This document shows, piece by piece, positions 1 through 47,316 of a stretch of 64,000 nucleotides of DNA (positions are counted from its first letter, which is position 1; every line of letters begins with the position of its first letter). The notes beneath the pieces are model-generated. The model was not told the DNA's origin. It did no database searches and saw only the letters and a program-made list of their open reading frames with translations. Origin of the DNA: Tubulanus polymorphus (taxonomy: Eukaryota > Animalia > Nemertea); NCBI RefSeq assembly GCF_964204645.1, contig NC_134033.1:4860231-4924230 (forward strand), in the 5' to 3' direction. The translations under genes were made by a program, and so were the position numbers.

Positions 1-342
1 CGTCTCTAAAACGCTTGAATTCATCCATTGTGTAAAACTAAACTTGAGTCGTCTACACGTGTTACAGTTGTTTGATGATTTTTACGCGCGTTGCGATGAA
101 GAAAATACTCGGTACCACCGAATCAATAACGAATAGCGAATAGCGTATGACGATTAACGAATAGCGAATAACGTTTAGCGATTGACGAACAGCGTGGCGG
201 TCCAGGAATTCCGAACGGTTGAGGTTTTCAAAAAGAGAGAGATCGTGAAAATATATACATACAAGCATTCATAGAATGTGTGCATTTTACGTGACGCATT
301 GGTAGGTGTTCCATTTCATAGATTACAGGTTTCTCTCTCACG

Positions 343-1411
343 ATGAATTTCAGTTCGCAGACGACTTCACTACTCTTTACAACTACTAGAAATCCCTGCT
401 CACCTTACTTATTCCAAAACGTATTGTCAATCAGCGTAAAACTAGCTGGAGGTTTTCCTATCAGTATCGTCGGAATAATTTTGAATAGTTTCAGCATTGT
501 GATTTTACGTCGCCAAACTTCAAATCACATATGGCTCTACATTCTGCGATGTCTGGCAGTGGCTGACATAATCTTTCTTACATTTCACATAATTCAAGAG
601 CCTTTTCGTTTCATTGTCTCCGGTTTGACCCAGGGTAGTCATATGTTCGTGATTCCTACGAGTATGAGTTGGGGTATTCGGCCATGGATCTATCGGGTAG
701 CTTGGTTACCGAGAAACTCAGCGCAAGTGACAAGGAACTGGATAACTGTACTACTAGTTTTAGAAAGGTCTTTTTCTATCGCTAGGCCATTCTTCGCTAG
801 AACTCATTTCACAATACCAAGGGTAAGAATTGTAGTTTGTTGTTTCTATATTATTTTTGGTATCTTAGGCTCTCCATTGATTATCGGTACTACAGTAGGT
901 ATCTGGTTTTATGACGAATGTAATAAAGTCGTCATGAAATCCATCCGCCTGAGCAAGCGATCCCATACGAAGATACTTTCTCATTGAAATATTTACGTCG
1001 ATTGATCACTTTCCTAGTCCTTTGTATAAAGAAATCCTACCTGCTTTATTGCTAATAATTTTCAACAGCCATCTGATATGGACTCTGAAAAAGATTAGTT
1101 CCAGGAGAAAAGAAATGACACACGAAGGCGAACAAAGGCTAGACGTGAAAGCTATCAGGATAGCTGTACCTATTGTTATTTTGTTTGTCGTCTGCGAAAT
1201 CCCTGCTTCGTTCCGATCTTATAACAGTTTCATCGGTCGCTTCGTCAAAATGCCACCTATTAAATACTCTCACACCATCTATACCCTTCAAGAACTGTTT
1301 ACCGATCTTTTACCGACCTTGAACTCGTCTGTAAATTTCTTTATCTATTACATAGCAAACGATAATTTTAGAGGAACTGCAATAAAATTGTTGAGAAGGC
1401 GGCCAATTTAA
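343..1411 (+). pseudogene. Intronless class A GPCR (FMRFamide-receptor-like), frameshifted copy
   Basis: Split over ORFs 343-987 and 1022-1411; versus 36764-37828 it has a +1 base near 949 (atccgcctgagc vs atccgcggagc) and a 3-nt insertion near 987; ERS, CEIP and NSSVNFFIY motifs present. Confidence 0.88.
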
Positions 1412-1587
1412 ACTCAGTCGAGCGAAACAGATATATTTTGGATCCGTCCAGGCTTTTTTAGATTTCAGAGCCCTATCCCCTACGCCACATTTGACGAGGA
1501 TTTAAAATGTGTGATTGCCGTTTAATCACTAAACCAGTTAATTACAAAGATGGAACAGAATTTGAAAAAATCACTCTGGATACTTAA

Positions 1588-2605
1588 TCTTCCGCTGGGG
1601 ATATATTTCTTCATTATCCATTCAATGTGGGGAATCAATTTTGGCCTTTATTGTCTTATGATTTCTATGTAAAGTTAGATACATTTCCAGTGTAGAGACC
1701 CTCCTAAAACCAATATCTGTTATGAAGCTAATAGGTATCTCTACCAGAAAATGTTAGTTATAAAAAGTTTGGACCTACGGGTGCAAGGTAGGGGGGTCCT
1801 ACCCCCCAAAACCTGAGGTCAAGTTGAGGTCACGCAACCAAAAACGTCTTTGTATTGCACTTTAGAAGCCAGAATCTTATACAAATAAAATAGTAAATAG
1901 CTATTTTCTTTCATAATATCATAGGACAACGAGAAAACCATCCAGGGCAGTCGTTTTATTCTTTGGGGGGTCAGAAATTTCAAAAAATCCTCAGGGTCTC
2001 ATAAAAGTGAAAATCGCTCAATTTTCGCTGATTTCGTAATCACTTCTCAGTTGTTTGGTTTCTTTGGGTTTCCTCAATGTTGATCCTCTGAATCCTCTAG
2101 ATATCTCATTTCCTTGATATAAAACGTGTCAGGGAGTCATCTGGGGGTCACCTTGACCCCCCAGATGACCCAGGGTTTTCAGATAATTAGGCTCCTAAAA
2201 ATGAAACTTATTCAAATGAAATTCAAAGAAATCGTTCAAATTTATTCAAGCATTAATTTGAGAGTTTATTTAGTGATAAGATTGCATTTTGCAAGTTTGT
2301 TTAGTTAAATGATTGATATGTTCTAGGCGATAATTGAGCTGGGTATGGTATATGTCGAAACAAGGAATATGGTCCAAAACCGCTGATACAACACTCACAT
2401 TCCTGGTTGCCGACGACAACCAGTACATACTGCCTGTGTGTGTAGAGTATATACAATCGCTTGTGAGCTCTCTATATGTCAGCAGCCAGGCTCGACTAGT
2501 TTGCCATCTATCGGGGGTAATAGGAACCGTCACTTGAGGCGTGACCACGACCTAGTCTCTTTGTTTAAGCTGTCACGTGAGGCGTGGTGACGCCAACTGA
2601 AGAGT
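1588..2605. mobile_element. Non-autonomous DNA transposon inserted at TTAA, present only in copy A
   Basis: Copy B has the empty site tacTTAAagttg (~37999-38010); here TTAA flanks both ends (1584-1587, 2606-2609); imperfect TIRs tcttccgctgg / ccaactgaaga. Confidence 0.8.
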
Positions 2606-5600
2606 TTAAAGTTGCTGGGAACATTAAGATAATGATTAATGCAACATGAGCCAGGTACTTTGAAATGGATGTTGTCATTGCGAATTTATTAAAAGAACTG
2701 TTGAAGGTCTCTTTAAAACTGTGTACATTAATTACTTTTTTAATTAATTAATTTTTTTAGAACATCAAATCTCTCTATGGATCCAATTAACCCGATTGCC
2801 TTCGTTCTTGCACTTTATGTCACAGTATCAATATCTCCGACGATCTTAGTTATTACGTAATAAGCAAATTGCGATACTTTGTGATATTTGCTAACAGTAT
2901 GAATTCAAGCGTATATGCGGCTTTGTGTGATATGTAATACGTATCATAGCGAATTGACAACGTGAGGGTTGTGAAATTGGAGGAACTGATGTGGAATAAC
3001 AATAGACCGAGATCTACCTATCTAGAGTCGCCGTGACAGAAATGAAACAGCGCGAAATGGCTTCAAAATGATGACTTAAAAAGTTCGTAGCCACTATAAT
3101 CTACATATAGAATAATTGTAATAAATCGTTGAATCTAATTCTGTCTTCTGTAATGAATTTCTATGTTCGCAATAAAACACTGACGTTCACTGGTACGAAA
3201 AACAACCGCTTCTATTACGAGATTATATGAAATTGAGAGGAGACCTCAAAATAACAAATAACGAGTGATTTGAATCATCAATTAAAAAACCGCGTCTTCT
3301 AAAAATACACCCGAGAAATATCGACATCAAAAAATCGCGCGCCCAAAATCAGCTCAAATACCAATGAAATAATTCACCCATATAAAACCAGAAATCTAGG
3401 TTCCACAGGAATAGGGCCCGACCAAAACCGGCTGTCTGAACCTGAAACCAGTTGTACGTAAGTAAATGTCATTTGTATTTCATAAGAAGTAGAGTTCAAC
3501 TCTTCAACTCTTCATCTTACTCAAATCACACTTAACTCACAAACTGTCAAAAATTTCCAATCAAGTTCAATTGTAAATAAATGCAACTTTATTGTTAAAA
3601 AGTTCCACTTAAACTTACATATTCTGTATTTTATATCAACAGCTGAAATTATGTTTTAATTAAAAGATCTATCAACTAAGTATTCTAACCTAACCTATAT
3701 ATTCGGCCTACCCATTCAGGCTAGGGTTTGGGGGTAGGGAGGCGGATACTGAAATTGAGAGACATGATATACAGGTCACACCGGAATTCTTCAGTCACTC
3801 TGTCATCATCATTCAACTTAAGGATCAATCTTCTGTGACTAGGGGATCTTGATCTTCTCACTGAAGTAGAACATACAGGCCGCACCTGAATCGGGCCACT
3901 CTGTTGTGTGCTGGGGGTGAAGACACGTACTCTGTGGCCCAGTCTTCTGGGGTCTTGTCTCAGCGATGACCCTGAAATTGTCATGTTTATTTCAAGTAAA
4001 ATATTTACATAAAAGGCGTTGTCTTATAAAACAATACATTTGAAAAATCTGAAATTCTGTAAAAATAAAAAAAAACATGAAAATAGAGAGAAACCCTGGA
4101 ATAAAAGAAGCATGAAATACAGGAACATGAAATAAAGATATGAGGCATAAGTAATAAACAAACTGCTATTTCTATCTGTAGACCCAGAGACCCACAGGAC
4201 CCTGACGTAAATAGCACCCTATTTACTAATTAACGCATTTTATTTAAGATTGTATTAATATTCATGCATTTCTATAACTTACTAACTCACCAAGTAAGTT
4301 CCTAAACTAATTAAACCTATAAAACATAATTTCGACTGTTAATGTTTTTCTAACTTACAATTTATCCAATCCTGTGTGTGTAATGTATGAATCCAATGAT
4401 AATCCTTGAGTCAATTTGAATCCTTGTGTTTTTGATAACAGTTTTTTTAGCACAGTTTATATCAATCCAGAACTAGTTTGAGCGCGATTTCATTCCAAAT
4501 AAATCCTGAACAATAATACAATTCAAATTCCATTTAATTTCCAGTAACGGCTCAGTTTTTGAGAACGGTTTATCTTTCGTCCATCCAGAATACATCCTGA
4601 TATGTTCACAAGAGGGGTCTGCTTGTTTTACGGGAGACAGTTTGAGCACCTCTATCCAGACTGGTAAACCATACACCATCGCGATAACCTCTAGGTGTAA
4701 ACATATACAAGACACCCAGTTGTAATAATCTGTGCGAACGACAAGAATTGTCGAACACAATGAAGTTTCATATTTCATATTATCTAACTATTGGGGTCAC
4801 TGGTCATAATCCATCTTCGCTCTATAAACTGCGCGGCGACTCTAGTGAAGAAATCAATCTATTCTGAAATGCATGAAGTTTATATCGGTATAAATCATAA
4901 ATCTCTGATAGCAAAATGATTTAATTTGAAAATTGAATTATTAAAATTGCCGTTAAAACCAGCTTCCAAAACTTCCTCATTAATGATTGGACGCATAATT
5001 AGTCATACTCGTCGATGATTGGCTAATTTGTACGAAATATGCATAAACTGGATGATTTACGTAAGTTCTCAGCGGACCCGATATTTACGCGGGAACCTTA
5101 CAAATGGTTCCACCTTCTTAGGAATAAAAGTTCCATCACTTCTGTGAAAATCCACCCTCCGAAGACATGGCTGACTTCAGCCCCGGAAATCCAGGAAGAA
5201 AGACACTGAATATTTGGATGGATGAAAGCTGTGGGTACTGGAGTGTGTAATGGGTAGTGTAGTGCGATCTGTGTGCATTTGTGGCCAGCACACCGATCAC
5301 ATTTTTCATTGGGGTGTGGTCCAGAACTCACGAGATTTTCAACAACACGGAAGTAACGTGTAATAAATGATGACTTGAATTGCATGACTACCTACCACCC
5401 CTCATTATTGTTGGAAAACTAAACGTTCCGCACTGACTAAAAATTAGTAATAATAATTAATAAAATTTTAGAAATGGCCAGAATTTTAACTTAGGTTCCA
5501 TCTCATTTTTATTTTACAATTGCGATTGGTATAATTTTTTTTTAACGGCCGTTATGGCTTCGTATATCGTCTGCAATTCACTGCAAATAGTTACGCAACT

Positions 5601-6109
5601 ACGCACGTGTTTTTGGCAGCTGTACACTCAATCGGCACCGTTCGTGACTAGCTTCACTGTGGAATTATCATTAATCAACATCGCCATATCACATCATCAA
5701 CTCATATTGTGCCTTAAAACCCTAACAGCCGACCTTAATTGAAATGCACACACGATTTCTACCATTGAAAATTGAGAGAGTGGCCATGTTTGTGTTCTGC
5801 TGCTTCGCGTAAATCCCGCGCGGTGGCGCAACCGCGCGGAGTGGGGCCGATACGTCTAGCGGCAATATCGTTCTTGACTCCTTGAAAGGAATTGTCGCCC
5901 ATAGGGCTGATCAGGTCAGGAAGGTCCGCTGATTTTTTCATCTAATAAATTTCACATTTTTATCTTCCTCCATTTGCTTATCTATAACACGAGGATATAT
6001 TTACTCTTTTATCGATCCATCTAAATCTGTTAAACTTCCTCAACCAAAGCGATTGTTTTGGCTATGTATATACGGGTATAGGTGAATCAATACTTTCTAT
6101 ATCACGACG

Positions 6110-9100
6110 ATGAAGACACGTCTGTTCTTTATAATCTGCACAGTTTTGTTGCAACTGGGAAATTTATACATTACACAAACATCTGGAGCTGAAAGTAAGT
6201 TACTGCAGCAGCCATTACTAGACTTTGTGATTATATTTCAGTCAGATTTGCGAATTCGATGACGTCACCTGTTAAATAATAGATTTTCTACAGGCCCTAA
6301 ATGCAACCTGACAAAACAACAAACTATGAACACATCTGGTTGACTTAATTTCGCATGAAGTCTGTATCTTGATGTCTGGTTTGATAAAAAACGAGTCGCT
6401 TATCACCTCACTAACCAGGGGTGGAGTCAGACGTTTGAGTAGAGGGGTCAAGTGCAGTTTTTTCCCAGGTATCTCTTATATATTTCAATGAAAAATACAT
6501 TCATAAATTAACCGTGTGCAGTAATTTCCGGCAGACGCCGCGAAACAGAAATCGATAAAGATTTGAATCGTGGTTTATTCTATCATTAATATGATTGATG
6601 TTTATATTCATTTGTTTCAGCAATTTACGGGACGCCTCATTCTGCTCGAGATGCAAAACCCGACAATAAAACGCAAGGAGAAACGATTCGATATACTTGT
6701 AAAATAATTGGCAGAAATTCTACAGTATCATTCCAAGAGAAGAGAAACGGTTCGGAACAATGGGAAACAGTTCCAGACGACCAGCTTAACAGAACTAAAG
6801 ACAAACAGAATGTTGAGTTGGTTGAGCTAAAATTCCAAGCAGATTTCAAACTACACAATGGATCTTCATTTAGATGTCTTGTAAATGAAAGCCCAACAGA
6901 TCCGGAACCTAATCAGTTTGATCTGATCGTAGTTAAACGAACTGGTAAGTAACAGTTTGTGTTGCTTATTGAAATAATCAAATAATCTAGAGCATTAACT
7001 TGCATTCTTGGTTTTCCTAGAAATATCATAGAGTCAAATTGAGCTGATAAAATGTCTGATATCTGGTGTTTGTAGAGTTCGTTTTTAGCCCATTTTGGAC
7101 TTTAGTCCCAGCGGGCTAGTGCGTTCACTTTTCGTCCGTAGACGGAATCCAGTTATTTTGACGAAGATTCAAGACTGGCAGCCATTGTTGTTCGCCAAAA
7201 TCAGCACTTATTCCACATTTTTCAAGTTTTTAAGGGAAATTTTGAAGAGACTTTTATCAATTATCGTGGTCTTTCGTAAATATTTTCATCCCCCAAAGGG
7301 CCCATCAGCACGAGAAAAATTTGGCCGATCGGACTCAAGATGGTCGTCCTTTGACCTAGGCGCTACAAATAGCAATCGATGTAGATTTTAATTGTGGTTA
7401 GTTTCATCATTAAATGATTGATCTCACTATCAGAAATAATCTGAACACGAAGCATGGGAAGCATGGTTCGATACCCTCTAACACCCCACCCCCCCCTCCT
7501 TGGATTTTCTTCTGATAAGTTATTCGAAGTTTGACCGAGTACTTTGCTTGGGAAGGCTATTAAATGTGTACTGTGCTATATATTTATATTCATTCGTTTC
7601 AGAAATCAATCCAATGCCAGATCTCAAAGGAAACCCCGACAGTAAAACACAAGGAGAAATTGTAAATTACACTTGTAAAATTGTCGGAAATTTTAATGCA
7701 ACATTAACATTCCAAGAGAAGAGAAGAGCTTCAGAACAATGGGAAACAATTCCAGACGACAAGCTTCACAGAGCTAGCAAAAAGAATGTCCATTCCGTTG
7801 AGCTAAAATTCCAAGCAAATTTAAAACACAATGGAACGTCATTTAGATGTCTTGTAAAGGAAACCCCAACAGATCTGGAACCTATTCAGTTTTATCTAAT
7901 CGTACTAGTTAATCGAACAGGTAAGTAACTGTCTGTGTAGCTAATTGAAATAGTTAAACAACTTAGAACATTAAAACTTGCTTTCTTGGTTTTCCAAATT
8001 GTGCCGATAAAATGTCCAATGTCTGGTGTTTGTAGTTTCATCCGTACTGTTTCATTTTCAATTAAAAATGTCCCTGGTCAAGTGCTGAACACATGTGAAA
8101 TGTGGACGATCAATTTTTTGAAAGTTTTCTTTTGAAATATCTCGTGTAAATATCATCTGTTGGACCGCGGTTTGTTGCCTCCTCCTGTATTTATTCCGTC
8201 CGTTCATCTCCGTACAAGAATAAATTTTGTGTCAACCATTTTACGGCTCTCAGATTTAAGAATTAGATCGTTGATTTCACCGTCTGAAGCTCAATTTTCT
8301 GACTGGCCACGCAGGAAGTATTCTTTAATAGGCGCCGCATTCATAACGGATCTCATTTTCGTGTTTGTTGTTCATTTTATGCGAAAAGGCACATTGATTT
8401 ACAAATCAGCTATTTTTCGTTCCGTGTACTATACTTAGTTTACGCAAAGATCCAGCATAAGGTTTTCTAATTTTTGCACAGTCAAAAGAGTGAAAAAATT
8501 GCCTAAAACCATTAACTTCATCAGGTGACGGGTGGAAACCAATGACATTTACTGAAAAATGGCTAAAAGCTGGGTGGGTCCAGGAGGAGGTATGACATCA
8601 TGTGACCAGTGATAGTTAATAACAATAAGCGTTACTACGGCGTTAAATGCATATTTGTTCATTACGGAAAACACTTTTTTTCCAGGCTACTTTGAAAGCA
8701 AAGCCACACGCAGTGAAAGTTACTTTCAAATTGTAGTTTTTTTCTCTCATTTCAGATGATTCAAGTTCCACTCAAATCCCGACGACTGAAACCACTACAT
8801 TCGGGTCAGTATTCATTTCGAGCTAAAAATGTCCGACGGTAAAAGTTCCTAGACGATGTAAGGGTTCCTGTTGTTTCGTAACAACGGTTGATACTAGACT
8901 ACGTATCACACTCTGCTTTGCGGTCTATGTGTTTTGTAAAAATAACTTGATTCGATATCTCGCTTGTCTCTGGTTTCTGAATAAGAATCACGTGCTGGTT
9001 GGTGTATTTATAATGCTGATGTTTAGATGTGTCGGGGTCAATGAAACTGGAATTGTAATAAAAACTGGAACATTCACTAATTATTCATGTCGTTTTCTAC

Positions 9101-10672
9101 CATCAGCTGAAAATTTGGGAATAAAGGCAATCGAAAAATATGTGACATCGATGCCGCTACCACCAGCCCTGCTTTTGTTCAATTCTTCGCTGTTAATTTG
9201 TTTTTTGATCGTAAATTTCGTCCTTTTCATTCAGAGTTCGCCTGGTTACTACTGAAGAAAAGTTTCGCTCGAAAAACAAGGTCATTATGAATTTAACTTA
9301 TAATATCAAACTTTCATGTGGAATATAGTCCCCGGATCCATCGCACAATTAATACCCACTTAACGTGGGGTAAAACAAAACAAACTTTGGAATAATTATA
9401 TACATAAAATATAATTTTCATCACCTTAATATTTATTTATGTATTCATTTTTTTTCTCAGACTGACCCAACCGCCCAACCTAAACTGGGCCAGACTGACC
9501 GCACCACACATGACTGGACCATGACGATAGTTTACATCATTAGTGGAGTTATCGGTTTCCTCCTCATCATCGTTATTATCGTAGTCATCGTTTGCAGGTA
9601 TTTTACTAAACTAACACGGTAGATTTCTGAAGAGATTATAACTATGTCTGATTCGACCGAAGTTAGGTCGATTGTTGTCGTTAGTTCCAAGTCGAGTTTG
9701 TTGGTGACGTCATATATAAATGATAACGTAACAGCGCGCGTGTCTACTTACTTCGATTAGAACATACACGACAAATGTTGTTATTATATTCTGGGCTTTC
9801 CCGACAAAATGGCTGATAACCAACAAAAAAACTAGTCGCATTTGCTTTTTGTCACAACAAAATAGCCTATAAGGAACGTGATAAAGCATTTTGATTTTAT
9901 AATTGGTCGGAAAACAGGTTTTCGTAAGGTAGGCCTACTGGCAGTACATTAAACTGTTCAAATTCCAATAAAAAATGTCGAAGTTCCAATTTTCTCTAAT
10001 TATTCTTCAAAGTAATGACGACTTTGATAAACTCATAGGAATTGCAGAGACGGATCAATACACGAGCTTTTTATGCGCAGTTAACTCTTCTTTTCAAGAA
10101 GTTTTTCTAGATGCGGGCTTTGCAGTAAATGATCCGTACAGTATGATCTCTGATCAAAATCTTACATTATTTCAACATTTCTTTCTCGCTCGATTTCTTC
10201 AGCGCAAAACTACCCATTTTTCAGACGCAGGCGACGTTTCAGTGGAGATCGTGTGGACACTACACCCGAGTCTACAACACCGCAGCAACAACTCGAGATG
10301 GTGCATGGAGTCAACGACGAGTTGAATGATGTCATAGATTCGGGTAACGAAACTGACATACCACACACCAGCAATCAGAAAGTTACTACAGATCCGTGCG
10401 TGGATACTGAGGCCACAAACAACAAATATACGACTCCTTATATGGATATGGAAGCCGGGGGAGACACGCATAGAGATCAGTTCTCGAATCCCGAACCTTT
10501 CGTGACGTATCATCAGTTAACGGAAGATACTGGTGAACCTGTGAAAGATGATATTCAACATACGGATTATTCTTACGCTTCTGTTGAATATACTCGTGAA
10601 CAATTTCCATTAGGGGGCGCCACTGGACAAACAGTAACTGATTGTACATACACAAAACATACTAGGTTTTAA
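6110..10672 (+). CDS. Type I membrane receptor with 2 Ig-like domains and ITIM/YxxM tail, ~468 aa; exons 6110-6194, 6621-6944, 7603-7920, 8756-8804, 9235-9280, 9461-9597, 10225-10672
   Basis: All introns GT-AG with compatible phases, 1407 nt in total and open; signal peptide MKTRLFFIICTVLLQLG, two phase-1 exons with YTC...HNGxSFRC, S/T stalk, TM IVYIISGVIGFLLIIVIIVVIVC followed by RRRRR, tail with YMDM and VTYHQL. The two small stalk exons have weaker donors (gtcagt, gtcatt). Confidence 0.85.
8172..8617 (+). mobile_element. HINE/Helitron-type non-autonomous element in intron 3 of the Ig receptor
   Basis: Subterminal inverted repeats gcctcctcc / ggaggaggt, ccgtccgt-like tract after the 5' end, T-rich termini. 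Confidence 0.5.
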
Positions 10673-13669
10673 TATATCGTTTGAATGGTTACAACATTTG
10701 CTAAATGAAATCGACTAATCAACCAGGTGTCTAGTCTGGTTTGAGTCTCTGACTTGTGCAGCAGACGGATGGAGTTTCAGATCCGTGCACATCACTGCAC
10801 CACACAACTTATGCACTGGGTTGTCCATAACATTCTCCCTTTAAATAGGACATCACCGAGAAATATCGTTTATCTTTAGCAAATGTTTACTTTGGTCGAT
10901 TATACTCAAGCTGTAAATTGAAATTCCAATGATTAATCTTCAAAAATTAATCTTGAAATCGTTACCTTGAATAGAGTAAGCGTCAAGTCAAATAGTCATT
11001 TGTAGCTTAACTAGATTTGTTTTTAGTAAGTATGAGCTTCGTCGAAAACTTGGTAATGTTTATGAGACAAGGAATGCTTTACAAAGATAAAACAGGATTC
11101 TCAACAAGGATACACACAAAATAGGAATTATTGTCGAACAGATATGTAAATAGATATAATATAGTATTATGTACAATCAGACATTGTGCTGAAAAACCAT
11201 CGTGAATATTACAGCTGGCATTAACTGTGCGAGAAAGATAAAGTTAGGAAAGTCACTTTTTATGTTAATAGTTCATTGGTTATCTCGCTTGCCGCAAACT
11301 CTTAACGTTTTTGGCATCGTTTGACAACTATGACGTCATGCCAATGCTTGTTAATTGATCGAAAGTCGTAGTAAAAATAACGCCGACGCTTCTCATTTTC
11401 GTAGTAACTACAAATTGAAACTCCGTTTACGTGAAATATTAGACACAGCTGGAAATGACTAAACATAATGTTTCGATTATCCCCCTACAACAAAGCGTCG
11501 CCAGATTTATGATTTAATGGTCCACAAAAGTTATTTCATCACATATTTGCTCGTTAATTGCTACCAACATGCATGTATAACTGGCTTAGATTCAGAAATC
11601 TAAAAATGAAACTTCTAGGTATAACGAGGTCATGCGCCAGAATGTCAGTAGATGGCGCCACGTAAATGTAGATATAGTCGTTCTGGGAAACCCAGAAATA
11701 ATTTTGAAAAAATAAACGGCAACCCGAATTCGATTTTATTCTATCACGCCGTAACTCGTAAGTTTAAACACGGTTCACAACTCGAAAGTAAAACGGATCA
11801 TGATAGCGACACGAATACGAATACGCTCCAAACATTTCCATGGTAAGAGGATGGAAAAAACGGTACTTAAAAATAATTACATAAACGTTAATTAAAGCAT
11901 TTAAAACTTCATAAACTGGACTCACATTCTACCGCAGAGGTCTCCACATCTACCGCAGAGATTCAGAATTACGATTTAGACCGGACCTGGTACCAATTTC
12001 TGTCCACACACATATGTACATTCAGACTGGTCCAAAATTTGGACCGAACCTGGTTCGCTCTTTTAGAACCAAATTTAGACCGGTCTAAATTTCGTCTTGT
12101 GAACGCGCCCTTAGAATAAACCGAATTAGTCTTGGGTCTAACGGCAACCTTTCCTGTTTATACTCCCAAGTAGGCATTTGGTCGGGAGCACTCGGAGATC
12201 TTCAGTGATGATGAAGAAATGCCTCGAAAATATTAACAGTAAGAAAAAGTATACAACGACAAAAACGATATTTATTATTTCAACAGAAAATCCGTGGACA
12301 CACATTTCATGGGGTCGTGGGTGGTCGTGTACGTACGGAAGTGGATACGTAATGTCCTATCTATATGAGGTACAACCAAAAATTATCACGATTGATCAGG
12401 ATTCGCAATTGAGATTCACTTGGGGTAAATTGATGAATATGTACGAACAAACTACATTTTAACAATTGACTTTACCACTATATATTTGACTACAAGCAAC
12501 GTATGAATATATCTATATCGGACTATTTTACACTACTAGGCTACTATATCTGTTAGGCCACACAAAGAAATACCCTAGTTTCTCATCAGATTTTTATCTG
12601 GAAAGTGACGAAGGCGGGCGAATTTTATTTTTATTCCTTTTTTCGAATGAAAAAGTTGAAATAAAAAGCTAAACCTGAGACTTATAGAACAGACGCGGGA
12701 GGGAAGTTTTTTTTACCAATGCCAAACAAATACCATTAATGCAAGTAGAACATATGCAAAAAAAACTTTATTTAGAATTAAGTAGCTCCCAAAAACCTAT
12801 AAAATCAAACTATATCGACTCATTTAATGGAAACTAATTTTCGCAGGTTTCACGCTTCCTCGTAATAAGTAAAATAAAACAAACTTGGCGCTGTTTTTGT
12901 CACCGTAAATGTTGATTACATGGACGTCGAGGATGAGCATATTAACGCCCGCAGAAAAAAATACAATGGACACTATACAGCTACGCAGGCGAGCGGGTTT
13001 TAATTTTTTATCAAAAAACGCTTTGTCTTTTTAGTTTTTATTAGGGATTTTTTCATGGTGTGGGTGGCATTTGACTTTCTTGAGAAACTAGTTTGTCGTG
13101 TGGTCTTTGACTACCAACCGATGACTACTACGATCAACGTTCGTTATAACGCCAACATACTTAATGTGGTCGCTCACTTAACGCCATCGTGTTTCAGAGA
13201 ACAAATCTGCCAAATCCAACACAAACGAAAATTCTATTCTGTATGAGATGTCAATTTTGTTATAATGCAGTGTGTTCAATTGGTCCCAATAGTGGCATTT
13301 AAAGGACTTCTACTGTATATCCATACGACACTACTTTACGTATTTGACTACATCTATATTATGAACATAAGTTTAATGAATCACATTTGACTAATGCCCT
13401 ACCGTAGCAATTTGTTTCGAAGTTCGACGATAAGTAGATACTGTTACTTTTTTTATTGTGTCTACATTTTCCGATGCAAGCTTTCTATGAGTATATTTAA
13501 ACGACTGTAAGACATCTCTAGAGAATGCTGAGCAGCAGGTTTGACTAGTTTGCCATCTAGAGGTAATACAAGTTATGAATCTGTCTTCAGTCTGGTAACC
13601 ACGCCTATACCTATTAGATTACATCGTCCCGGGCATGAGACCATCGGTTGAAGAGTTCTTTTAATCTAC

Positions 13670-16600
13670 TCAATTTTTGGCGGCTCGACTAAAATTGAAT
13701 TTCGCTCGACACATATCGAACACTCGTTTGTTGGCGATGAAAGCCAAGAAAACCAGAAAACCTTGAGACGAATTCAACAAATTGAAGAAATACCAGAGAT
13801 AATCGTTATTTACGAACGACGCTACGAACCCGACGATCCATGTTACCCCGGTCACTAAAGCCATCAGATAGAAAATGAATGTGGTCGTCCTCTTCTGTTT
13901 AGCGTTAGATGAAGAAGTGGACATCGCGGAAAATGACCGGTGAATGCAGTAAACTGTAGCTACGAATAGAATTATACTGACCAGATCGATAATACCGATC
14001 GGTAGAATGAACGCCATCAATAGGGAGAAACTGGAACTAAACCAACAAGTAACGGGGCTTCCGTAAACCGCACCGGAGTAATGAGTGGTATCGGTGTTGT
14101 GTAGGACGATACAGGGTCCGACAATGAGGAATGGAGAAAACCAAACTGATAGTAGATAGTACAGTAACGTCTTAGTAGAATCGACCAGTTTACGAATAGT
14201 GGAAAATGTAAGGAACATGTGAATAGAAACAGCGGCCATAGAAGCGAAAACAACCATCCAAATATAGTGTTTAACAGCAGCCATCGACACGCATAGTAAT
14301 CGATTATCAACGCCAACCAGGCTGGAAATATGAAGAGTTTGAGCCAAGGCGAGAGTTATACAGAGATTGATGATGAGTTTACCGGGAAGAGTTCGCAGAT
14401 CGGGAATATTCAAATAGATTACCACCGTTATCACGAGACTGACGACGGACAGACAGCTACAGGTGAAGGTAATCAGGAAATCGTGATCGGAAAATAACGA
14501 ACTGACCGTTATTTTGAATTTTGAATTGTTTTGTCGTCTGCAAACCATGGCTCCTGTACCAGAATACACTCGCACGCAGTCGATGATTTTAGTGGAACAT
14601 TTACTCGATTTTACTATTTTCGTTTTTCCGTCGTCGCTGGCGATTTGAAAAATTCTGTAATATTTGAAAGACGGGTTGGACTGGGCTAGAAACGAGTTAC
14701 TTCCGGTTTGGGTCATATTATTTTCTATGTCTGCCTCTGTATCGATGACGTCACAGCGAGTATTCTTAGTCAAACTCGTAGTCGACAACTCGTAACCGGA
14801 AATGGTCACCAGACTGCCATCATTACCGAATTGACACTTGATCATCGCCTCATATTTGCTCACGATTGATTCCATAGTGACGTCACCGAGAAACTCTTCG
14901 TGATTGGTAAGCGTGAAGTCGCGTCTGTACAATGACGATTCATGGCTTAAAGATGATAAACTTCCTATTTCTTTAATCTTTGATTTATCGACATCGCCGC
15001 AGACTTTCACTTTGAAATACATCAATTCATACCCGAAGTTTTTCATAACAAATCGCTGAGTTTCGTTAAACGTAATAAAGAAAGAGAAATACACGCGTAC
15101 GGATATTCTAGGCCATTCGTTCTCAACAAGCCGACAGACGGCGTTGTCTTCGACGGTACCCAGGAGCCGGTATCCACGTATACAGTCGTATCCGCGACAT
15201 CTACGCGTCTCCTGGTCAAATATTTCGTTTGTTTCCGAGCAGAGAAAGTCTTTCGGCGCCCACGAGATGACGGGCATTCCCGCAGTTCGAAATTCTACGC
15301 CGTTCGCGAGACTGAAATCGAGTAAGATATTCAAACCGAATGTTTTTTGGCCGGTTAGATCATAATTACAAACTAAGGTCGATTCGTTTAAAACACTGTC
15401 ACTCAGTTCACATTTCATACAGTAATAATTACGGTATGTTTTCACCCGTCCACCGACTACAGCTAATATCGGGTTAATCACCCGTCTGCATTTAGACCTT
15501 AAGTCTTGATCTGCTGACTCGTTGCAGTGTGACGTCACGGGTAGGTTACTGCGCATGCACGGTTGTAAAACCATGCGAAGTTTCCTGTGATGCGCGTAAG
15601 ATAAACGACAATCTTCGGGCAGCCGAACCTTCGCGGTATCGTCGCTTAAAGACGCGTTGTGCACGCTCGTGATGACGTCATCGATTCGTGTTGTGTTAGT
15701 GCACTGCAGGACGAGACTAGCCGGTTCGTATCGAGTGTCGTTGAACCCGTGACACATCGCGCAATACATATTCTTAAAGGGAAGCCAGTCGTCGATGTAG
15801 ACGGGAATCGTCGTAGCTAGATTACTGGACGGCGATTCGCAATAGCGACGCACGTCTGAATTCAAGTCGAAATCACTCGGGCATCGACCGATCGCTAAAC
15901 CTTTTGACTGATACGTCTCGATTCCGATTCCGTATATACAGTCGGTCCATTGAATTTGTTGTATCGTTTTTTTTTCGTCTCAATTCGTCCGCGTCGCTTC
16001 TTATGACGCACTTTCCAATCAGGTCACAACAGTTGTTGAACAGTCCACAAGTACATAAATTAGCCAAACAACCCGTGACTGGACAAACTCGAACTAAATC
16101 ACCATCTTCATCTATTTGCTCTGATGCCACCTTGTAATCTCCGATCAGTTGGCTGTTTTTGTTGTCGCCTCTTTCGGGAATTTTTCGACCAGGAATCCCA
16201 CGTGCGTTACCCGTTATCCCAGTTCCGGGAATCTGTCTACTCGGCATTCCAGATTCTGGAAATCGTTGGGCCGCGATGAAATAATCTGAAATAATCATGC
16301 GGCTTTTAGTTTCGTTTTTTTCGATAAAACACTTAATACGCAGACCCCCGTTTTCTCCCTGCCCCTCGCCACTTGAGCCGCGACCACACGAGCGTTTTTC
16401 TTTCGAAAAAATCTTGAACGAATTTGCCAAATCTCACTTAACCCTGGGATACCCAAACATACTTCTGACAGTAGGGCATACCCCATATTTATTTTTTTTC
16501 AGTTCATTTGGGTCCCCTATGACCAATCAATATCAGTTTTGGGTATATTTTCACATCAACATGCTTTTTGCGAGGGGTCACATATGACCCCCAACTGCTT

Positions 16601-23340: not shown

Positions 23341-26300
23341 ACTATTTACAATACTATATATACTATTGGAGGGATCTATATACATCTACGCCGGTCTTAA
23401 TGAATTTAGCTAATTTGACCGTTGGGTTTTTCAGAATATCAAGGGTTTTAAAGGTATTCAAATTCAAATATTTTTTGCGGGGTTCGTTTGGTAAGGTATA
23501 GTCAAACAGAAAATGGGATTCGTCACCGAAAGTATTACAAGTAGGGCATATTCTATCGGCTCTGTCTAAATGAAGGTTTGAAAATTTGTTCACAGGTAAA
23601 ACATAGGACCCGACCCTAAATTCAAATAAACTAGTTCCTATGTCATCACCAAGTTCTATTATATACTTCTCTAACCTAATATCATTTTATATTGCCTCAA
23701 GTTATTGTATATCGGATTAGTATTTATGGCAGATACGGTTTCTTGAAGGTGCTGGTCACGGAGTATCTGTTTTATTCGTTTTGAAAAAGATTTACTGTTA
23801 GTCATGAATTGCTGCGTCCAAATGCAGGACAAACCACAGTCATAAAAGGTTTTCTTTATATATGATAACCAAGGGCTCTTAAATTTATCTCTTAAAAATA
23901 AATTGAAAGATATTTTATAAAGTATTGAATTAAGTTTGGTTTGCTTTCCAGATACTGTTTTAACCCAATAGTTTATCATCCTGCGTCTAACATCTATATT
24001 CAAAGGATAACGTCCTAGCTCTGATAAAACTTGTAAGTTGCGAGAATATTTAGTCACTTTCATTAAGATATTACAGAAGAAGCAGTGAATATTTTCTAAT
24101 AAATCAAGATTTTCGTATCCCCAGATTTCACACCCATACATGGCTATTGGAGCAACACACATATCAAATAATTTAAACATAACATCTATGGGCAATTTCA
24201 AAAGTCTGCCTTTTTGAACGATCGAAAACATTGCTCTCATAGCTTTATCGTAAAGATACTTTTTTGCCTTATGAAAGTTACCATTCCAATTAAATTTAAC
24301 TCCGAGATAAACATAATCTTCAACTACCTCTAACTCTTGATCACCAAACATAAATTTCGAAATCGTTTTTATCCGGGATTTACTTCGCGCAAATAGTAGT
24401 ACTTTAGTTTTCTCTGAGTTTACAGTGAGACCATTAGCCGCACAATATTTAAATAAGGTATCTAAGTGTAGCTGAAGAGATTTCTCATCCTCAGCAAGAA
24501 TAACTTTAACATCTGCGTATAGTATTATGAATACATTCAGTAAAGTATCAATATCCTCGGCACGATTCAAATTTAGTTTTTCAATAAATGACAAAGTCGG
24601 TTTTCCGCGATCAATGAAAAATTCTTCAATGTCGTTTAAGAATAACGAAAAGAGGATAGATGAGAGATTTTCGCCTTGTCTTAAGCCTCTATCAGCTGCA
24701 AAGTATTGTGACGTGCAACCATTAAATTTAACACATGATTTTATGGAATTATACATATTTTTGACCACATTGAAAAAGTTTCCATTAACACTGTTAGCAA
24801 TTTATTTTCGCCATAACGTTACCCTACAAATCGAGTCGATAGCTTTCTTAAAATCATTTAAGGGGCAACAAAGTCTTCTACGATTGTTTTAAACGTGTAA
24901 ATATGATCAATGGTGGAATATTTCGATCTAAAGCCAGCCTGGGCTTCACTTATAATGTCATTCGTATCTAGGAATGTTGACAATCTTTGATTTAGGATAC
25001 TTGTAAATAACTTACCAAGACAGCTAACTAAGGTAATACCTATAATTATCAGGATTAGAAGGATCGCCATTCTTTTTGAAAATGGGTTTGATGACGCATA
25101 TAGACCACATCTCTGGAACATATCCTGTTTTAAGAACTAAATTGAATATTTTTTGTAATATATCAACCAAAAACGGATACTGACTAACTCCCAAAAGCTC
25201 ATTCGTGATTCCATCAATGCCTGGGGCCTTATTGTTTTTGAGTAAAGAGTTTTTGTTCCGCTCGTAGAGTTTAGCATCGACCAATACTTTTTTGGGTTAT
25301 TAATTTCGCATTCTCTCAATTCCTTAATAAATTCATCTTTTTGTTTTTTCTTATTTCCTCGGATGACCTTTTCATAGTTTTTAGATGAGTTCTTAAGGGA
25401 TTCAAAATTGGAAGGGGTAGGGCAACCCCAATATCTTTTTTTCATATAATTATATCTCTTCTGTGCATCTCTACAGTCCCTGCCATACAATTATATGAAA
25501 AAAAGATATTGGGGTTGCCTTACCCCTTATTAAGGTCTTCCTCGCAAAAGCCTTTTAAGTCCTCGGTATTCTCATTTTCGGATTCCTCGACGCCGTAGAA
25601 GATCAAATTGGTCAGATTTGATAATTGCGTCCTGATCACCGACAACTTTCTCTAAATCGCGAACTTTGCTTCTAAGTTGTTCGTTTTCACTCTTTAGTTG
25701 TAATACGTCCTGGTGGCAAAATTCAAGCGATTGTTTAACTTCGGTCATGTCCTTCTGCAAGTCGTCCAGAAGCTCTAATTTCGAAAGCTGGGAAAGAATC
25801 GCATCAAGTTTTGACGATATTCCATTGTCTGCTTCCTCACGTGATGCCGTTTCCTCAGTCGATTTATGATTCTGGCGATTCGGTCGATTTGATGCTGCAG
25901 TCTTCTGCTTCTTGTTAGGTGGTGAAACACTTTGTCTTCCCGCCATTTTCTCCAGGTCTCACCGAACGTCACACAGATTTTGTGGTTGAAAAAGAAAAAC
26001 AAATCGGTTAAGTTTCAATATATAGAAACGGGATCAACTGGCCGCAAAGAATTAAACTAGGCTAAACTTAACTAATCTAGGCCCTACGCACGTTAGTTCG
26101 TTTGTTACCAACCGGTTCAATTTGAATTAGTCTTAGTTGACTATGCAATGTTAATTCGTTTGATGTAAACTACTAGTTTTTAGTGTCTGTCGTGGCCGAA
26201 TAATTAAACCCAAATTCTCAGCTAATACGGGATAAACGCACAAAAACGGCAACGGAATAGCACTAAGTTAGAAAAAATAGTTTCCTTGGATAATGTTTGT

Positions 26301-26382
26301 AACTAAAATGTGAATATATACCTTGACGGTTGTTTGAATAATTCAAGGAGCGCGCCGAAAGTACGTCCGCACAGTATCATAC
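23155..26382 (-). mobile_element. Non-LTR retrotransposon (RTE-X-like), internally deleted and inactive
   Basis: Coiled-coil ORF1 at 25572-25946; RT motifs PGIDG, QAGFR, GLRQGENLS, LYADV (YADD mutated), YLGV, ELGRYPL; CxxC..DExH knuckle; AATAAA plus (ATCGTAA)n tail; TSD ACCGAT at 23149-23154 and 26383-26388. Confidence 0.92.
23290..23334. repeat. (AT)n microsatellite in the LINE 3' UTR
   Basis: Direct reading. Confidence 0.95.
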
Positions 26383-42607: not shown

Positions 42608-45600
42608 ATGAAGACGCGTCTGTTCTTTATTATCTGCACAGTTTTGTTGCAACTGGGAAATTTATACAACACACAAACATCTGGAGCTGAAAGTAAGTTA
42701 CTGCAGCCGCCATTACTCGATTTTGTGATTATATTTCAGTCAGATTTGCGAATTCGATGACGTTAGCTGTTTAATAATAGATTTACTACAGGCCCTAAAT
42801 GTAACCTGACAAAACAACAAATATAAACACATCTGGTTGACTTAATTTCACATGAAGTTTGTATCTTGATGTCTGGTTTGATAAAAAACGAGTCGCTTAT
42901 ATAATCACCTCACTAACCAGGGGCGGAGTCAGACGTCTGAGTAGAGGGGTCAAGTGCAGTTTTTTCCCAGGTATCTCATATATTTCAATGAAAAATACAT
43001 TCACCGTGTGCAGTGATTTCCGGCAGACGCCGCGAAACAGAAATCGATAAAGATTTGAATCATGGTTAATTTCATCATTAATATGATTCATGTTTATATT
43101 CATTTGTTTCAGTAATTTACGGGACGCCTCATTCTGCTCGAGATGCAAAACCCGACAATAAAACGCAAGGAGAAACGATTCGATATACTTGTAAAATAAT
43201 TGGCAGAAATTCTACAGTATCATTCCAAGAGAAGAGAAACGGTTCGGAACAATGGTTAACAGTTCCAGACGACCAGCTTAACAAAACTAAAGACAAACAG
43301 AATGTTGAGTTGGTTGAGCTAAAATTCCAAGCAGATTTCAAACGACACAATGGATCTTCATTTAGATGTCTTGTAAATGAAAGCCCAACAGATCCGGAAC
43401 CTATTCAGTTTGATCTGATCGTAGTTAAACGAACTGGTAAGTAACCGTTTGAGTTGCTTATTGAAATAATCAAATTATCTAGAACATTAACTTGCATTCT
43501 TGGTTTTCCTAGAAATATCATAGAGTCAAATTGAGCTGATAAAATGTCTGATATCTGGTGTTTGTAGAGTTCGTTTTTAGCCCATTTTGGACTTTAGTCC
43601 CAGCGGGCTAGTGCGTTCACTTTTCGTCCGTAGACGGGATCCAGTTATTTTGACGAAGTTTCAAGACTGGCAGCCATTGTTGTTCGCCAAAATCAGCACT
43701 TTTTCCACATTTTTCAAGTTTTTAAGGGAAATTTTGAAGAGACTTTTATCAATTATCGTGGTCTTTCGTAAATGTTTTCATCCCCCAAAGGGCCCATCAG
43801 CACGAGAAAAATTTGGCCGATAGGACTCAAGATGGTCGTCCTCTGACCTAGGCGCTACAAATATCAATCGATGTAGATTTTAATTGTGGTTAGTTCCATC
43901 ATTAAATGATTGATCTCACTATCAGAAATAATCTGAACACGAAGCATGGGAGGGGTTCGATAGCCTCTAACACCCCACCCCCCCCCCCTCCTTGGATTTT
44001 CTTCTGATAAGTTATTCGAAGTTTGACCGAGTACTGTGCTGGGGAAGGCTATTTAATGTGTACTGTGCTATATATTTATATTCATTCGTTTCAGAAATCA
44101 TTCCAATGCCAGATCTCAAAGGAAACCCCGACAGTAAAACACAAGGAGAAATTGTAAATTACACTTGTAAAATTGTCGGAAATTTTAATGCAACATTAAC
44201 ATTCCAAGAGAAGAGAAGAGCTTCAGAACAATGGGAAACAATTCCAGACGACAAGCTTCACAGAGCTAGCAAAAAGAATGTCCATTACGTTGTGCTAAAA
44301 TTCCAAGCAGATTTCAAACTGCACAATGGAACGTCTTTTAGATGTCTAGTAAAGGAAAGCCCAACAGATCGGGAACCTATTCAGTTTGATCTAATCGTAC
44401 TAGTTAATCGAACAGGTAAGTAACTGTTTGTATAGCGAATTGAATAAGTTAAACAATTTAGAACATTAAAACTTGCTTTCTTGGTTTTCCTACAAATATC
44501 AAAGAGTCAAATTGTGCCGATAAAATGTCCAATGTCTGGTGTTTGTTGTTTCATCCGTAGTTTCATTTTCTTTTAAAAATGTCCCTGGTCAAGTGCTGAA
44601 CACATGCGGAGAATGGACGACCAATTTTTGAAAGTATTCTTTTAAAGAATCTCATGTAAATATCATCTGTTTCGACATCGAATTTACTTTTTTTTCACGC
44701 ATTATTTTCGTTGGACCGCGGTTTGTTGCCTCCTCGTTGATGTATCTATTCCGTCCGTTCCTCCCGTACAAGAATAAATTTTGTGTCAACCATTTTACGG
44801 CTCTCAGTTTTAAGAGTCAGATTTCGTTGATTTCACTGTCTGGGCCCAGTTCCACACTTGTGAATTAAGAGTTGACTCAGAGTTAACTCATTGAAAATGA
44901 ACTAAATTAACTCAAGTTAACGCTAACTCAGAACTGTGGAACTGGATGCTGAAGCACTGTTGTCTGACTGGCCACGCAGGAAGTATTCTTTATTAGGCGC
45001 CGCATTCATAAACGGATCTCATTTCGTGTTTGTTGTTCATTTTATGCGAAAAGGCACATCGATTTACAAATCAGCTATTTTGCGTTCCGGGTACTATACT
45101 TAGTTAACGCGAAGATCCAGCATAAGGTTTTCTAGAATTTTTGCACAGTCAAAAGAGTGAAAAAATTGCCTAACATCATTAACTTCATCAGGTGACGGGT
45201 GGAAACCAATGGCATTTACTGAAAAATAGTCTAGGAGGAGGTATGACATCATGTGACCAGTGATAGTTAATTATTATTAGTCGTTACTACGGTGTTAAAT
45301 GCATATTTGTTCATTACGGAAAACACTTTTTTCCAGGCTACTTTGAAAGCAAAACCACACGCAGTGAAAGTTACTTTCAAAATGTAGTTTTTTTCTCTCA
45401 TTTCAGATGATTCAAGTTCCACTCAAATCCCGACGACTGAAACCACTACATTCGGGTCAGTATTCATTTCGAGCTAAAAATGTCCGACGGAAAAGGTTCC
45501 TAGACGATGTACGGGTTCCTGTTGTTTCGTAACAACGGCTGATACTAGACTACGTATCACACTCTGCTTTGCGGTCTATGTGTTTTGTAAAAATAACTTG

Positions 45601-47316
45601 ATTCGATATCTCGCTTGTCTCTGGTTTCTGAATAAGAATCACGTGCTGGTTGGTGTATTTATAATGCTGATGTTTAGATGTGTCGGGGTCAATGAAACTG
45701 GAATTGTAATAAAAACTGGGACATTCACTAATTATTCATGTCGTTTTCTACCATCAGCTGAAAATTTGGGAATAAAGGCAATCGCAAAATATGTGACATC
45801 GATGCCGCTACCACCAGCCCTGCTTTTGTTCAATTCTTCTCTGTTAATTAGTTTTTTGATTGTAAATTTCGTGCTTTTCATTCAGAGTTCGCCTGGTTAC
45901 TACTGAAGAAAAGTTTCGCTCGAAAAACAAGGTCATTATGAATTTAACTTATAATATCAAACTTTCATGTGGAATATAGCCCCCGGATCCATCGCACAAT
46001 TAATACCCACTTAACGTGGGGTTAAACAAAACAAACTTTGGAATAATTATATACATAAAATATAATTTTCATCACCTTAATATTTATTTATATATTCATT
46101 TTTTTTCTCAGACTGACCCAACCGTCCAACCTAAACTGGGCCAGACTGACCGCACCACACATGACTGGACCATGACGATAGTTTACATCATTAGTGGAGT
46201 TATCGGTTTCCTCCTCATCATCGTTATTATCGTAGTCATCGTTTGCAGGTATTTTACTAAACTAACACGGTAGATTTCTGAAGAGATTATAACTATGTCT
46301 GATTCGACCGAAGTTAGGTCGATTGTTGTCGTTAGTTCCAAGTCGAGTTTGTTGGTGACGTCATATATAAATGATAACGTAACAGCGCGCGTGTCTACTT
46401 ACTTCGATTTGAACATACACGACAAATGTTGTTATTATAATCTGGGCTTTCCCGACAAAATGGCTGATAACCAAAAAAAAACTAGTCGCATTTGCTTTTT
46501 GTCACAACAAAATAGCCTATAAGGAACGTGATAAAGCATTTTGATTTTATAATTGGTCGGAAAACAGGTTTTCGTAAGGTAGGCCTACTGGCAGTACATT
46601 AAACTGTTCAAATTCCAATAAAAAATGTCGAAGTTCCAATTTTCTCTAATTATTCTTCAAAGTAATGACGACTTTGATAAACTCATAGGAATTGCAGGGA
46701 CGGATCAATACACGAGCTTTTTATGCGGAGTTAACTCTTCTTTTCAAGAAGTTTTTCTAGATGCGGGCTTTGCAGTAAATGATCTGTACAGTATGATCTC
46801 TGATCAAAATCTTACATTATTTCAACATTTCTTTCTCGCTCGATTTCTTCAGCGCAAAACTACCCATTTTTCAGACGCAGGCGACTTTCCAGTGGAGATC
46901 GTGTGGACACTACACCCGAGTCTACAGCACCGCAGCAACAAGTCGAGATGGTGTATGGAGTCAACGAGGAGTTGAATGATGTCATAGATTCGGGTAACGA
47001 AACTGACATACCACACACCAGCAATCAGAAAGTTACTACAGATCCGTGCGTGGATACTGAGGCCACAAACAACAAATATACGACTCCTTATATGGATATG
47101 GGAGCAGGGGGAGACACGCATAGAGATCAGTTCTTGAATCCCGAACCTTTCGTGACGTATCATCAGTTAACGGAAGATACTGGTGAACCTGTGAAAGATG
47201 ATATTCAACATTATTCTTACGCTTCTGTTGAATATACTCACGATCAATTTCCCTTAAGGGCTGCCACTGGACAAACAGTAACTGATTGTACATACACAAA
47301 ACATACTAGGTTTTAA
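42608..47316 (+). CDS. Ig-domain ITIM receptor, copy B, ~467 aa; exons 42608-42692, 43113-43436, 44095-44415, 45407-45455, 45886-45931, 46112-46248, 46875-47316
   Basis: Same splice sites as copy A, 1404 nt and open; the only coding indels are in-frame (+3, -6); YMDM, VTYHQL and YSYASV retained. Confidence 0.85.
44843..44948. mobile_element. MITE with CTG TSD, present only in copy B
   Basis: Empty site cgtCTGaagc at ~8281-8290 in copy A; TIRs ccagttccaca / tgtggaactgg. Confidence 0.85.

Follow-up and report, generated by a model that had tools for sequence, protein, structure and literature searches.

A lineage-specific immunoglobulin-superfamily receptor gene with a tyrosine-motif tail in the nemertean Tubulanus polymorphus, familiar in architecture, annotated yet uncharacterised

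The genome of the palaeonemertean Tubulanus polymorphus comprises 268 Mb in 77 contigs, and we analysed one stretch of it, 64,000 nucleotides long (C9:4860231-4924230, hereafter the window). Positions 6110-10672 of its forward strand hold an intact seven-exon protein-coding gene. Reading the DNA from 5800 to 11000, we found that all six introns are of the GT..AG type, and the in-frame translation of every exon was recovered, exact and contiguous, in a RefSeq protein of 468 aa described as "uncharacterized protein" (XP_074658350.1, here P0104; LOC141911260), with one junction residue between adjoining exons. The seven-exon model is identical to that of RefSeq, and its exons, which encode among other things two immunoglobulin (Ig)-like domains and a transmembrane (TM) helix, are the following.

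6110..6194, + strand: exon 1, 28 codons plus 1 nt that begin with the ATG and encode the signal peptide, followed by donor GT at 6195 (P0104 residues 1-28)
6621..6944, + strand: exon 2, Ig-like domain 1, phase 1-1, 324 nt (P0104 residues 30-136)
7603..7920, + strand: exon 3, Ig-like domain 2, phase 1-1, 318 nt (P0104 residues 138-242)
8756..8804, + strand: exon 4, Ser/Thr-rich stalk, 49 nt (P0104 residues 244-258)
9235..9280, + strand: exon 5, a 46-nt micro-exon needed to restore the reading frame (P0104 residues 260-274)
9461..9597, + strand: exon 6, juxtamembrane segment and TM helix (about 9527-9592), ending in Cys (P0104 residues 275-319)
10225..10672, + strand: exon 7, RRRRR stop-transfer sequence and an acidic, polar cytoplasmic tail of 149 aa (P0104 residues 321-468)

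The product is a small membrane glycoprotein of type-I topology, with an N-terminal signal peptide, two C2-set-like Ig domains that carry many N-glycosylation sequons, a Ser/Thr stalk, a single hydrophobic TM helix of 22 residues, a positive-inside poly-Arg stretch and a tail with seven tyrosines, which ends at a TAA stop codon (10670-10672). About 50 residues, encoded by exons 4 and 5 and the start of exon 6, lie between the second Ig domain and the helix. Pfam matches of P0104 to TMEM154, Myc_target_1 and Protocadherin were set aside as composition matches, all being below the cut-off and covering only the stalk, the TM helix and the poly-Arg stretch. A first-pass annotation, made from the letters of the window alone, had proposed this same order of parts, from signal peptide through two Ig domains, stalk, TM helix and RRRRR to the tail, with the same seven exons and phases, and both our reading and the exact exon-by-exon match to XP_074658350.1 bear it out. 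It had also called the gene hidden, which is not the case since RefSeq already holds exactly this model, and had remarked that the open reading frame (ORF) track shows only fragments of it; the bacterial-style ORF list does give only pieces, because such a track ignores introns.

Using an alignment of 16 paralogue Ig domains (A2), which also served for the profile searches, we obtained an AlphaFold2 model of the exon 2 domain with seven strands, a mean predicted local distance difference test score (pLDDT) of 74.9 and a predicted template modelling score (pTM) of 0.67. Searched with Foldseek, this model gave 317 matches in the PDB at E<=0.001, the best 50 of which are all of Ig type and include CD96, BTLA, PD-1, the shark IgNAR V domain and domain C1 of MyBP-C. 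VIA-align, which is independent of Foldseek and covered 48,161 chains, placed domain 2 of SYG-2 first (Z 10.0, root-mean-square deviation 2.6 over 93 residues) and domain 2 of Rst as its second named match (Z 9.7), and nearly all of the 50 matches listed are Ig domains. ESM Atlas features of the domain point to CD80-like C2-set clusters, and the homologous domain of a larger paralogue (P0008, residues 261-338) passes the Pfam C2-set_2 threshold with 22.9 bits against a cut-off of 21. Across the 16 paralogue domains Cys26, Trp47, Asn79-Gly80 and Cys85 are invariant, as is the F-strand signature N79-G80-x-x-F83-R84-C85, and the two cysteines are spaced by 59 residues. Exon 3 is a tandem duplicate of exon 2 and its flanking intron (76% nucleotide identity, 6598-7075 versus 7580-8035), and we conclude that both domains of the gene are divergent C2-set-like Ig domains. 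The Ig fold suggested by the first-pass annotation was in this way upheld by the structural comparison that it had recommended, and for the gene model and the fold taken jointly our confidence is very high.

The gene belongs to a large family. Matches to exon 2 number at least 66 genome-wide, C9 carrying them at 0.29-0.31 and 4.2-5.07 Mb, C6 at 17.5-22.8 Mb and one small scaffold as well, and the tail exon has 44, six of which are at least 92% identical and lie on C9 at 4.20, 4.40, 4.50, 4.87 (the gene itself), 4.91 and 5.08 Mb. The gene is thus a member of a young group of six copies that are about 95% identical and occupy 0.9 Mb of C9, within a wider family of several dozen genes clustered on C9 and C6 and seen in this species alone. 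The search for paralogues that the first-pass annotation had called for was thus productive, and several of the paralogues lack the immunoreceptor tyrosine-based inhibitory motif (ITIM) considered below. Positions 1-16296 of the window are duplicated at 36428-52449 with 95-96% identity; hence the window contains two copies of the gene, the second being:

42608..47316, + strand: second whole-gene copy (copy B), XP_074658312.1, LOC141911229, 467 aa, in the 16.3-kb segmental duplication

In each of the six C9 copies the reading frame is open through seven exons, the splice sites are canonical and no indel breaks the frame. The copy at C9 4.20 Mb (L035, C9:4197500-4206500) has no exon for the first Ig domain (Ig1) and a diverged exon 1, and the RefSeq model of one sister copy is without TM helix or tail. 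In another RefSeq protein, P0006 (823 aa), a family Ig domain follows a ubiquitin-hydrolase (UCH) protein as the C-terminal part; this looks like a chimeric gene model, possibly at the C9 4.20 Mb locus. Members of the family carry one or two Ig domains, and larger proteins hold the same domain type amid other Ig domains, together with Cys-rich tails, very long tails or ends resembling those anchored by glycosylphosphatidylinositol (GPI).

A search of 1.84 billion representative proteins with the Ig profile (A2) returned 86 hits. Every named match to the family, in two database searches, is a protein of T. polymorphus, and among the hits looked up from these 1.84 billion representatives no orthologue outside the species turned up. 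Ten weaker matches (P0016 onward), namely bacterial proteins, unnamed metagenomic proteins and one giant sea-urchin protein, were not accepted as relatives, as they align only to partial stretches of the profile; the bacterial ones are leucine-rich-repeat (LRR) or other repeat proteins. The earlier suggestion that the gene falls in a multigene family restricted to one lineage and assignable to no known gene is therefore supported by all named matches, and on these searches the gene is not an orthologue of a conserved adhesion molecule.

Comparison between family members also informs on the exons themselves. Against distant C6 paralogues, which share about 50% protein identity, what can be aligned in the DNA is largely exon sequence and the stretches directly next to it. 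Exon 5 has AG and GT sites that are invariant across paralogues, its lengths in different paralogues (46, 46, 43 and 40 nt) are all apart by a multiple of 3, and P0005 and P0003, two paralogues, have RefSeq models with the same junctions of exons 4, 5, 6 and 7. Between close copies the only exon indels are of 3, 3 and 6 nt, whereas each pair of copies differs by 19-23 intron indels, only 3-7 of which are multiples of 3, and this difference argues for coding constraint. The comparison of paralogues thus stands in, in part, for the missing read support of the exons.

The surroundings of exon 5 are unusually similar between paralogues. Comparing 9205-9339 with its counterparts in L034, L037, L039 and L040, we found that the roughly 30 nt of intron upstream and 60 nt downstream of the exon are 82-84% identical to the C6 paralogues, the Ig exon being about 74% identical. 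The RefSeq models of two paralogues (P0001 and P0088) continue beyond the donor of this exon, soon meet a stop and are without TM helix. In the gene itself, reading through this donor would run for 15 more codons (9281-9325) to a stop at 9326-9328; if exon 5 were skipped, the frame would shift and a stop would come ahead of the TM helix. On this sequence comparison, the exon 5 region may regulate whether the protein is made in a membrane-bound or a secreted form.

The cytoplasmic tail contains the four tyrosine motifs that the first-pass annotation had listed (PYMDM, VTYHQL, YSYASV and CTYTKH), located as follows.

10439..10450, + strand: YMDM, a YxxM motif, the gene's single copy of the family's 14-residue DTTPYMDME unit (PYMDM at 10436-10450)
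10502..10519, + strand: VTYHQL, which matches the canonical ITIM and lies on the cytoplasmic side of the TM helix and RRRRR, kept in the six C9 copies
10568..10585, + strand: YSYASV, C-terminal motif of the form YSYA[ST]V, which fits YxxPhi and not the strict ITIM, kept in 8 of 15 family tails
10643..10660, + strand: CTYTKH tail motif

We counted such motifs in 15 representative family tails, which together contain 154 tyrosines. Of these tyrosines 65 lie in a YxxM motif (40 YMDM, 12 YIDM, 6 YMNM and 2 YINM), within a unit of 14 residues with the consensus D-T-T-P-Y-M-D-M-E that is present in 1-12 copies per tail. No tail is without a Y[MIL][DN]M, and Y[MI]DM is likewise present in all 15. YxQL occurs in five of the 15, and the strict ITIM is carried by a few family members besides the six C9 copies; the counterpart of VTYHQL is TKYLQL in P0005 and RTYLQL in P0014, and P0003 and the L037, L039 and L040 copies lack it. 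YMDM, VTYHQL and YSYASV are unchanged in all six C9 copies, in whose tails 16 other positions vary; VTYHQL is identical in all six, but since they are about 95% alike this is little informative. The weight that we give to YMDM comes from its conservation across paralogues and not from its occurrence in a single tail. The emphasis of the first-pass annotation on the ITIM consequently stands only in part: the gene does carry a canonical ITIM, but what the family conserves is YMDM, and the strict ITIM is limited to the C9 subfamily and a few others. From these counts the hallmark of the family is the p85-type YMDM motif rather than the ITIM, and the C9 subfamily stands apart in having a canonical ITIM and just one YMDM unit, fewer than any other. 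More unusual than the gene's own tail is the tandem YMDM array of its relatives.

The copies on C9 also differ in how they have changed. Among five of them, Ig1 has undergone 14 non-synonymous and no synonymous events (p about 0.03 when set against the neutral site ratio and about 0.025 when compared with the other exons, where the counts are 39:14). Open frames combined with fast amino-acid change fit a recognition receptor under diversifying selection, and would also fit a partly relaxed constraint after duplication. Several of the 14 replacement sites, at exon 2 codons 34, 56 and 59, gain or lose N-glycosylation sequons (NST/NSK, NRT/RRT), so that the position of the glycans differs between paralogues. 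Identity in the introns is mosaic: intron 6 of the gene is 99% identical to copy B and L033 and 89-91% to L031 and L032, and intron 1 is 98% identical to L031 and 92% to copy B and L032. The C9 copies may have undergone gene conversion or recombination with one another, as this pattern suggests.

Intron 2 (about 6952-7452) and intron 3 (7954-8120) contain very high-copy repeats, with a summed contig depth 100-1000 times that of the flanks in the DNA-like runs, and many joints fall in the span from about 7075 to 8051, as if the two introns contained short elements related to each other. The 16.3-kb duplication carries, besides the Ig receptor, ORFs resembling G-protein-coupled receptors (GPCRs), and an ORF with a reverse-transcriptase domain, presumably a retroelement fragment, lies between the two duplicated segments. 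These other features of the window are:

36764-37828, + strand: rhodopsin/Srw-like GPCR ORF
49830-52526, - strand: secretin/adhesion-type 7tm_2 ORF (counterpart at 13670-15865, - strand)
26377-27483, - strand: further 7tm_2 fragment
23671-24768, - strand: the ORF with the reverse-transcriptase domain (RVT_1, E 3e-15)

The first-pass annotation had likened the gene to vertebrate inhibitory receptors and to the Alr allorecognition proteins of Hydractinia. The layout is indeed analogous, but no sequence relationship was found, and the stalk is too short for the spacer of Alr proteins. Like KIR, LILR, the CD33-related Siglecs, PD-1 and BTLA, the worm protein is a type-I receptor with one to few Ig domains, a stalk, a TM helix and a tyrosine-motif tail, and as in the KIR, LILR and Siglec clusters each Ig domain is encoded by one phase 1-1 exon and the genes are clustered and rapidly duplicating, with fast-evolving distal domains. 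It also shares with the vertebrate ITIM receptors a strict match to [SILV]xYxx[ILV]. However, Pfam, protein-profile and PDB-sequence searches detected no homology to these receptors, and no match to a Siglec in particular; the worm domain is nearer to C2-set_2 than to the V-set of Siglecs and PD-1; and, unlike in the vertebrate ITIM clusters, there are no charged-TM partners in the family and the ITIM is not family-wide.

The core motif of the family, Y[MI][DN]M, corresponds to the optimal ligand of the p85 SH2 domains. YxxM motifs are also found in the co-stimulatory or adaptor tails of CD28 (YMNM), ICOS (YMFM) and DAP10 (YINM), which the worm tail resembles, and YMDM in PDGFR-beta and Kit; IRS-1, ErbB3 and CD19 are docks with multiple YxxM motifs. 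As in tails of the CD28/DAP10 type, the YINM and YMNM variants of worm paralogues also fit the YxN motif of Grb2, and the worm genome contains a p85-like gene of SH2-iSH2-SH2 structure. By contrast with CD28, ICOS, DAP10 and IRS-1, the worm motif stands in a tandem 14-residue unit on small Ig receptors without a kinase, in 1-12 copies, the present gene having one.

The Alr family of Hydractinia is likewise an invertebrate, lineage-specific and clustered family of the Ig superfamily (IgSF) whose Ig domains escape standard hidden Markov models, in which a single exon encodes a single domain, some splice forms are without TM helix and there are many paralogues and pseudogene-like copies (PMC9546547). 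[quoted passage not shown] Unlike the worm family, Alr belongs to another phylum, and no sequence similarity between the two was found. Alr proteins have an Fn3-like extracellular spacer between Ig domains and TM helix (PMC9546547); a spacer of this type is excluded in the worm protein because its stalk has about 50 residues and an Fn3 fold about 90.

Candidate effectors are present in the genome. In a p85-like gene (C2:27959217-27961507), SH2, iSH2 and SH2 exons follow one another on the same strand inside 2.3 kb, and two loci are SHP-like, encoding two SH2 domains followed by a protein tyrosine phosphatase (PTP) domain (C7:4119481-4125084, - strand; C7:19099445-19103665, + strand). Such genes are expected in any bilaterian, and they show only that the proposed partners exist in the genome. 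In the mechanism that we propose, the ligand of the Ig domains would be extracellular and either non-self or a partner on a cell surface; once it is bound, a Src-type kinase would phosphorylate the tail tyrosines and the phosphotyrosines would dock SH2 proteins. Phosphorylated YMDM (pYMDM) would dock the p85 subunit of class IA phosphatidylinositol 3-kinase (PI3K), and in the C9 subfamily pVTYHQL would dock an SHP-type phosphatase, so that the gene product may be a damped or inhibitory member of a family otherwise docking PI3K.

We consider it rather probable that the best explanation as a whole is an intact two-Ig receptor gene of a species-restricted family that signals through a phosphotyrosine tail. 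The chances are about even that it is a recognition receptor signalling in this manner, and a specifically inhibitory role is possible, if doubtful. An immune or self/non-self role of the gene is something that we infer. The wider picture of a nemertean self/non-self system, in which multi-YMDM members would be activating in the manner of DAP10 and CD28, the C9 subfamily inhibitory, Ig1 diversifying and exon 5 a switch between membrane and secreted forms, seems to us quite improbable in its entirety.

Several observations weigh against this explanation. Three read runs contain the stretch, with about half of the sampled words present, and they cover introns as evenly as exons, as DNA would, with no intron-sized joints; the single run that may be RNA has nothing on the gene, and its junctions are without read support. 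Pfam gave no match at E<=10 for exons 2 and 3 taken singly and no Ig domain on full-length P0104, and a PDB-sequence profile search with the Ig domain retrieved noise (eL33, E 0.41) and no Ig chain, so that the call of the fold rests on a model of intermediate confidence and on transitive homology. Of the shuffled tails, 12% contained an ITIM match, 14% a YxxM and 1.4% the two together, and the single ITIM and single YxxM in one tail are thus only weakly beyond chance. No family member has a Lys or Arg in mid-membrane, three having a Glu at the cytoplasmic end of the helix; the versions with a charged TM residue that the first-pass annotation had thought worth seeking were accordingly not found in this form, and there is therefore no classical paired activating receptor to inhibit. 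All the YxxPhi motifs could equally be sorting signals for the adaptor complex AP-2, and the ratio of non-synonymous to synonymous substitution rates (dN/dS), about 0.4-1.1 between close copies in the second Ig domain, the TM exon and the tail, also fits relaxed constraint.

The structural matches raise the question whether the gene encodes a cell-adhesion or tissue-patterning molecule of the IrreC/Kirre/SYG kind, with Ig domains that would make contacts between cells and a tail that would link to PI3K or the cytoskeleton in development. The best matches of the worm domain (Z 9.7-10.0) are the second, CD80-like C2-set domains of SYG-2 and Rst, and the language-model features likewise point to CD80-like C2-set domains, which are typical of the group comprising IrreC/Rst, Kirre, SYG-1 and SYG-2. 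However, these proteins are conserved across Bilateria, with 5-10 Ig domains and PDZ-binding tails, whereas the worm protein has two Ig domains, a tyrosine-motif tail and a species-restricted distribution; a developmental adhesion molecule should be conserved, and no orthologue was seen among the 1.84 billion representatives. Dozens of young tandem copies, and a distal Ig domain in which changes are nearly all amino-acid replacements, are not what this account predicts either, and the structural match is that of a generic Ig fold at 10-12% identity. We therefore regard an adhesion role as unlikely. An endocytic or phagocytic cargo receptor, in which YMDM, YHQL and YASV would be YxxPhi signals for AP-2 and not SH2 docks, would account for the fit of all three conserved motifs to YxxPhi and for the acidic, repetitive tails, as found in some recycling receptors; the tail has three YxxPhi matches, and 72% of shuffled tails contain one or more. 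YxxPhi allows any bulky hydrophobic residue at +3, but in 52 of the 154 tyrosine contexts (40 YMDM and 12 YIDM) the family has Met at +3 and Met or Ile at +1, within a fixed DTTPYMDME unit, which is far more specific than sorting needs. The p85 SH2 preference is pY-[M/I/V/E]-x-M, which the family motif matches. One sorting signal suffices, yet the unit has been amplified up to 12 times, and a purely endocytic role appears to us a rather slim prospect.

It may also be asked whether the six C9 copies are simply recent, drifting duplicates, weakly transcribed or not transcribed at all, that are becoming pseudogenes with their motifs as relics. Divergence between copies in exons (2.5-2.9%) is little under that in introns (3.1-4.1%), dN/dS is near 1 in several exons, the runs checked gave no RNA support, and one sister copy has lost Ig1 and another is modelled by RefSeq without TM helix or tail. 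Against this stand the six copies with frames open over seven exons, canonical splice sites and indels confined to in-frame ones, the identity of the three conserved tail motifs in all six despite 16 varying tail positions, and the 14:0 excess of replacements in Ig1, which is unlike plain drift. We consider decay of this kind very unlikely, and retain the reading of an intact receptor that may signal through tail phosphotyrosines.

The gene is a lineage-specific IgSF receptor with a tyrosine-motif tail. A literature search yielded no description of this family, or of such a receptor for Nemertea. Nemerteans are a classic model of graft rejection, for which, to our knowledge, no receptor has been identified. 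Clustered, lineage-specific IgSF receptors with tyrosine-motif tails have arisen repeatedly, as KIR/LILR, the Alr proteins of Hydractinia and the receptors of Botryllus illustrate, and it is on such receptors that innate recognition and allorecognition usually draw. The gene and its family thus provide concrete receptor candidates for nemerteans, with the prediction that pYMDM would bind p85 and pVTYHQL an SHP-type phosphatase, the genes for both effectors having been located, and with a natural contrast inside the family between members that have one YMDM unit and members that have 12.

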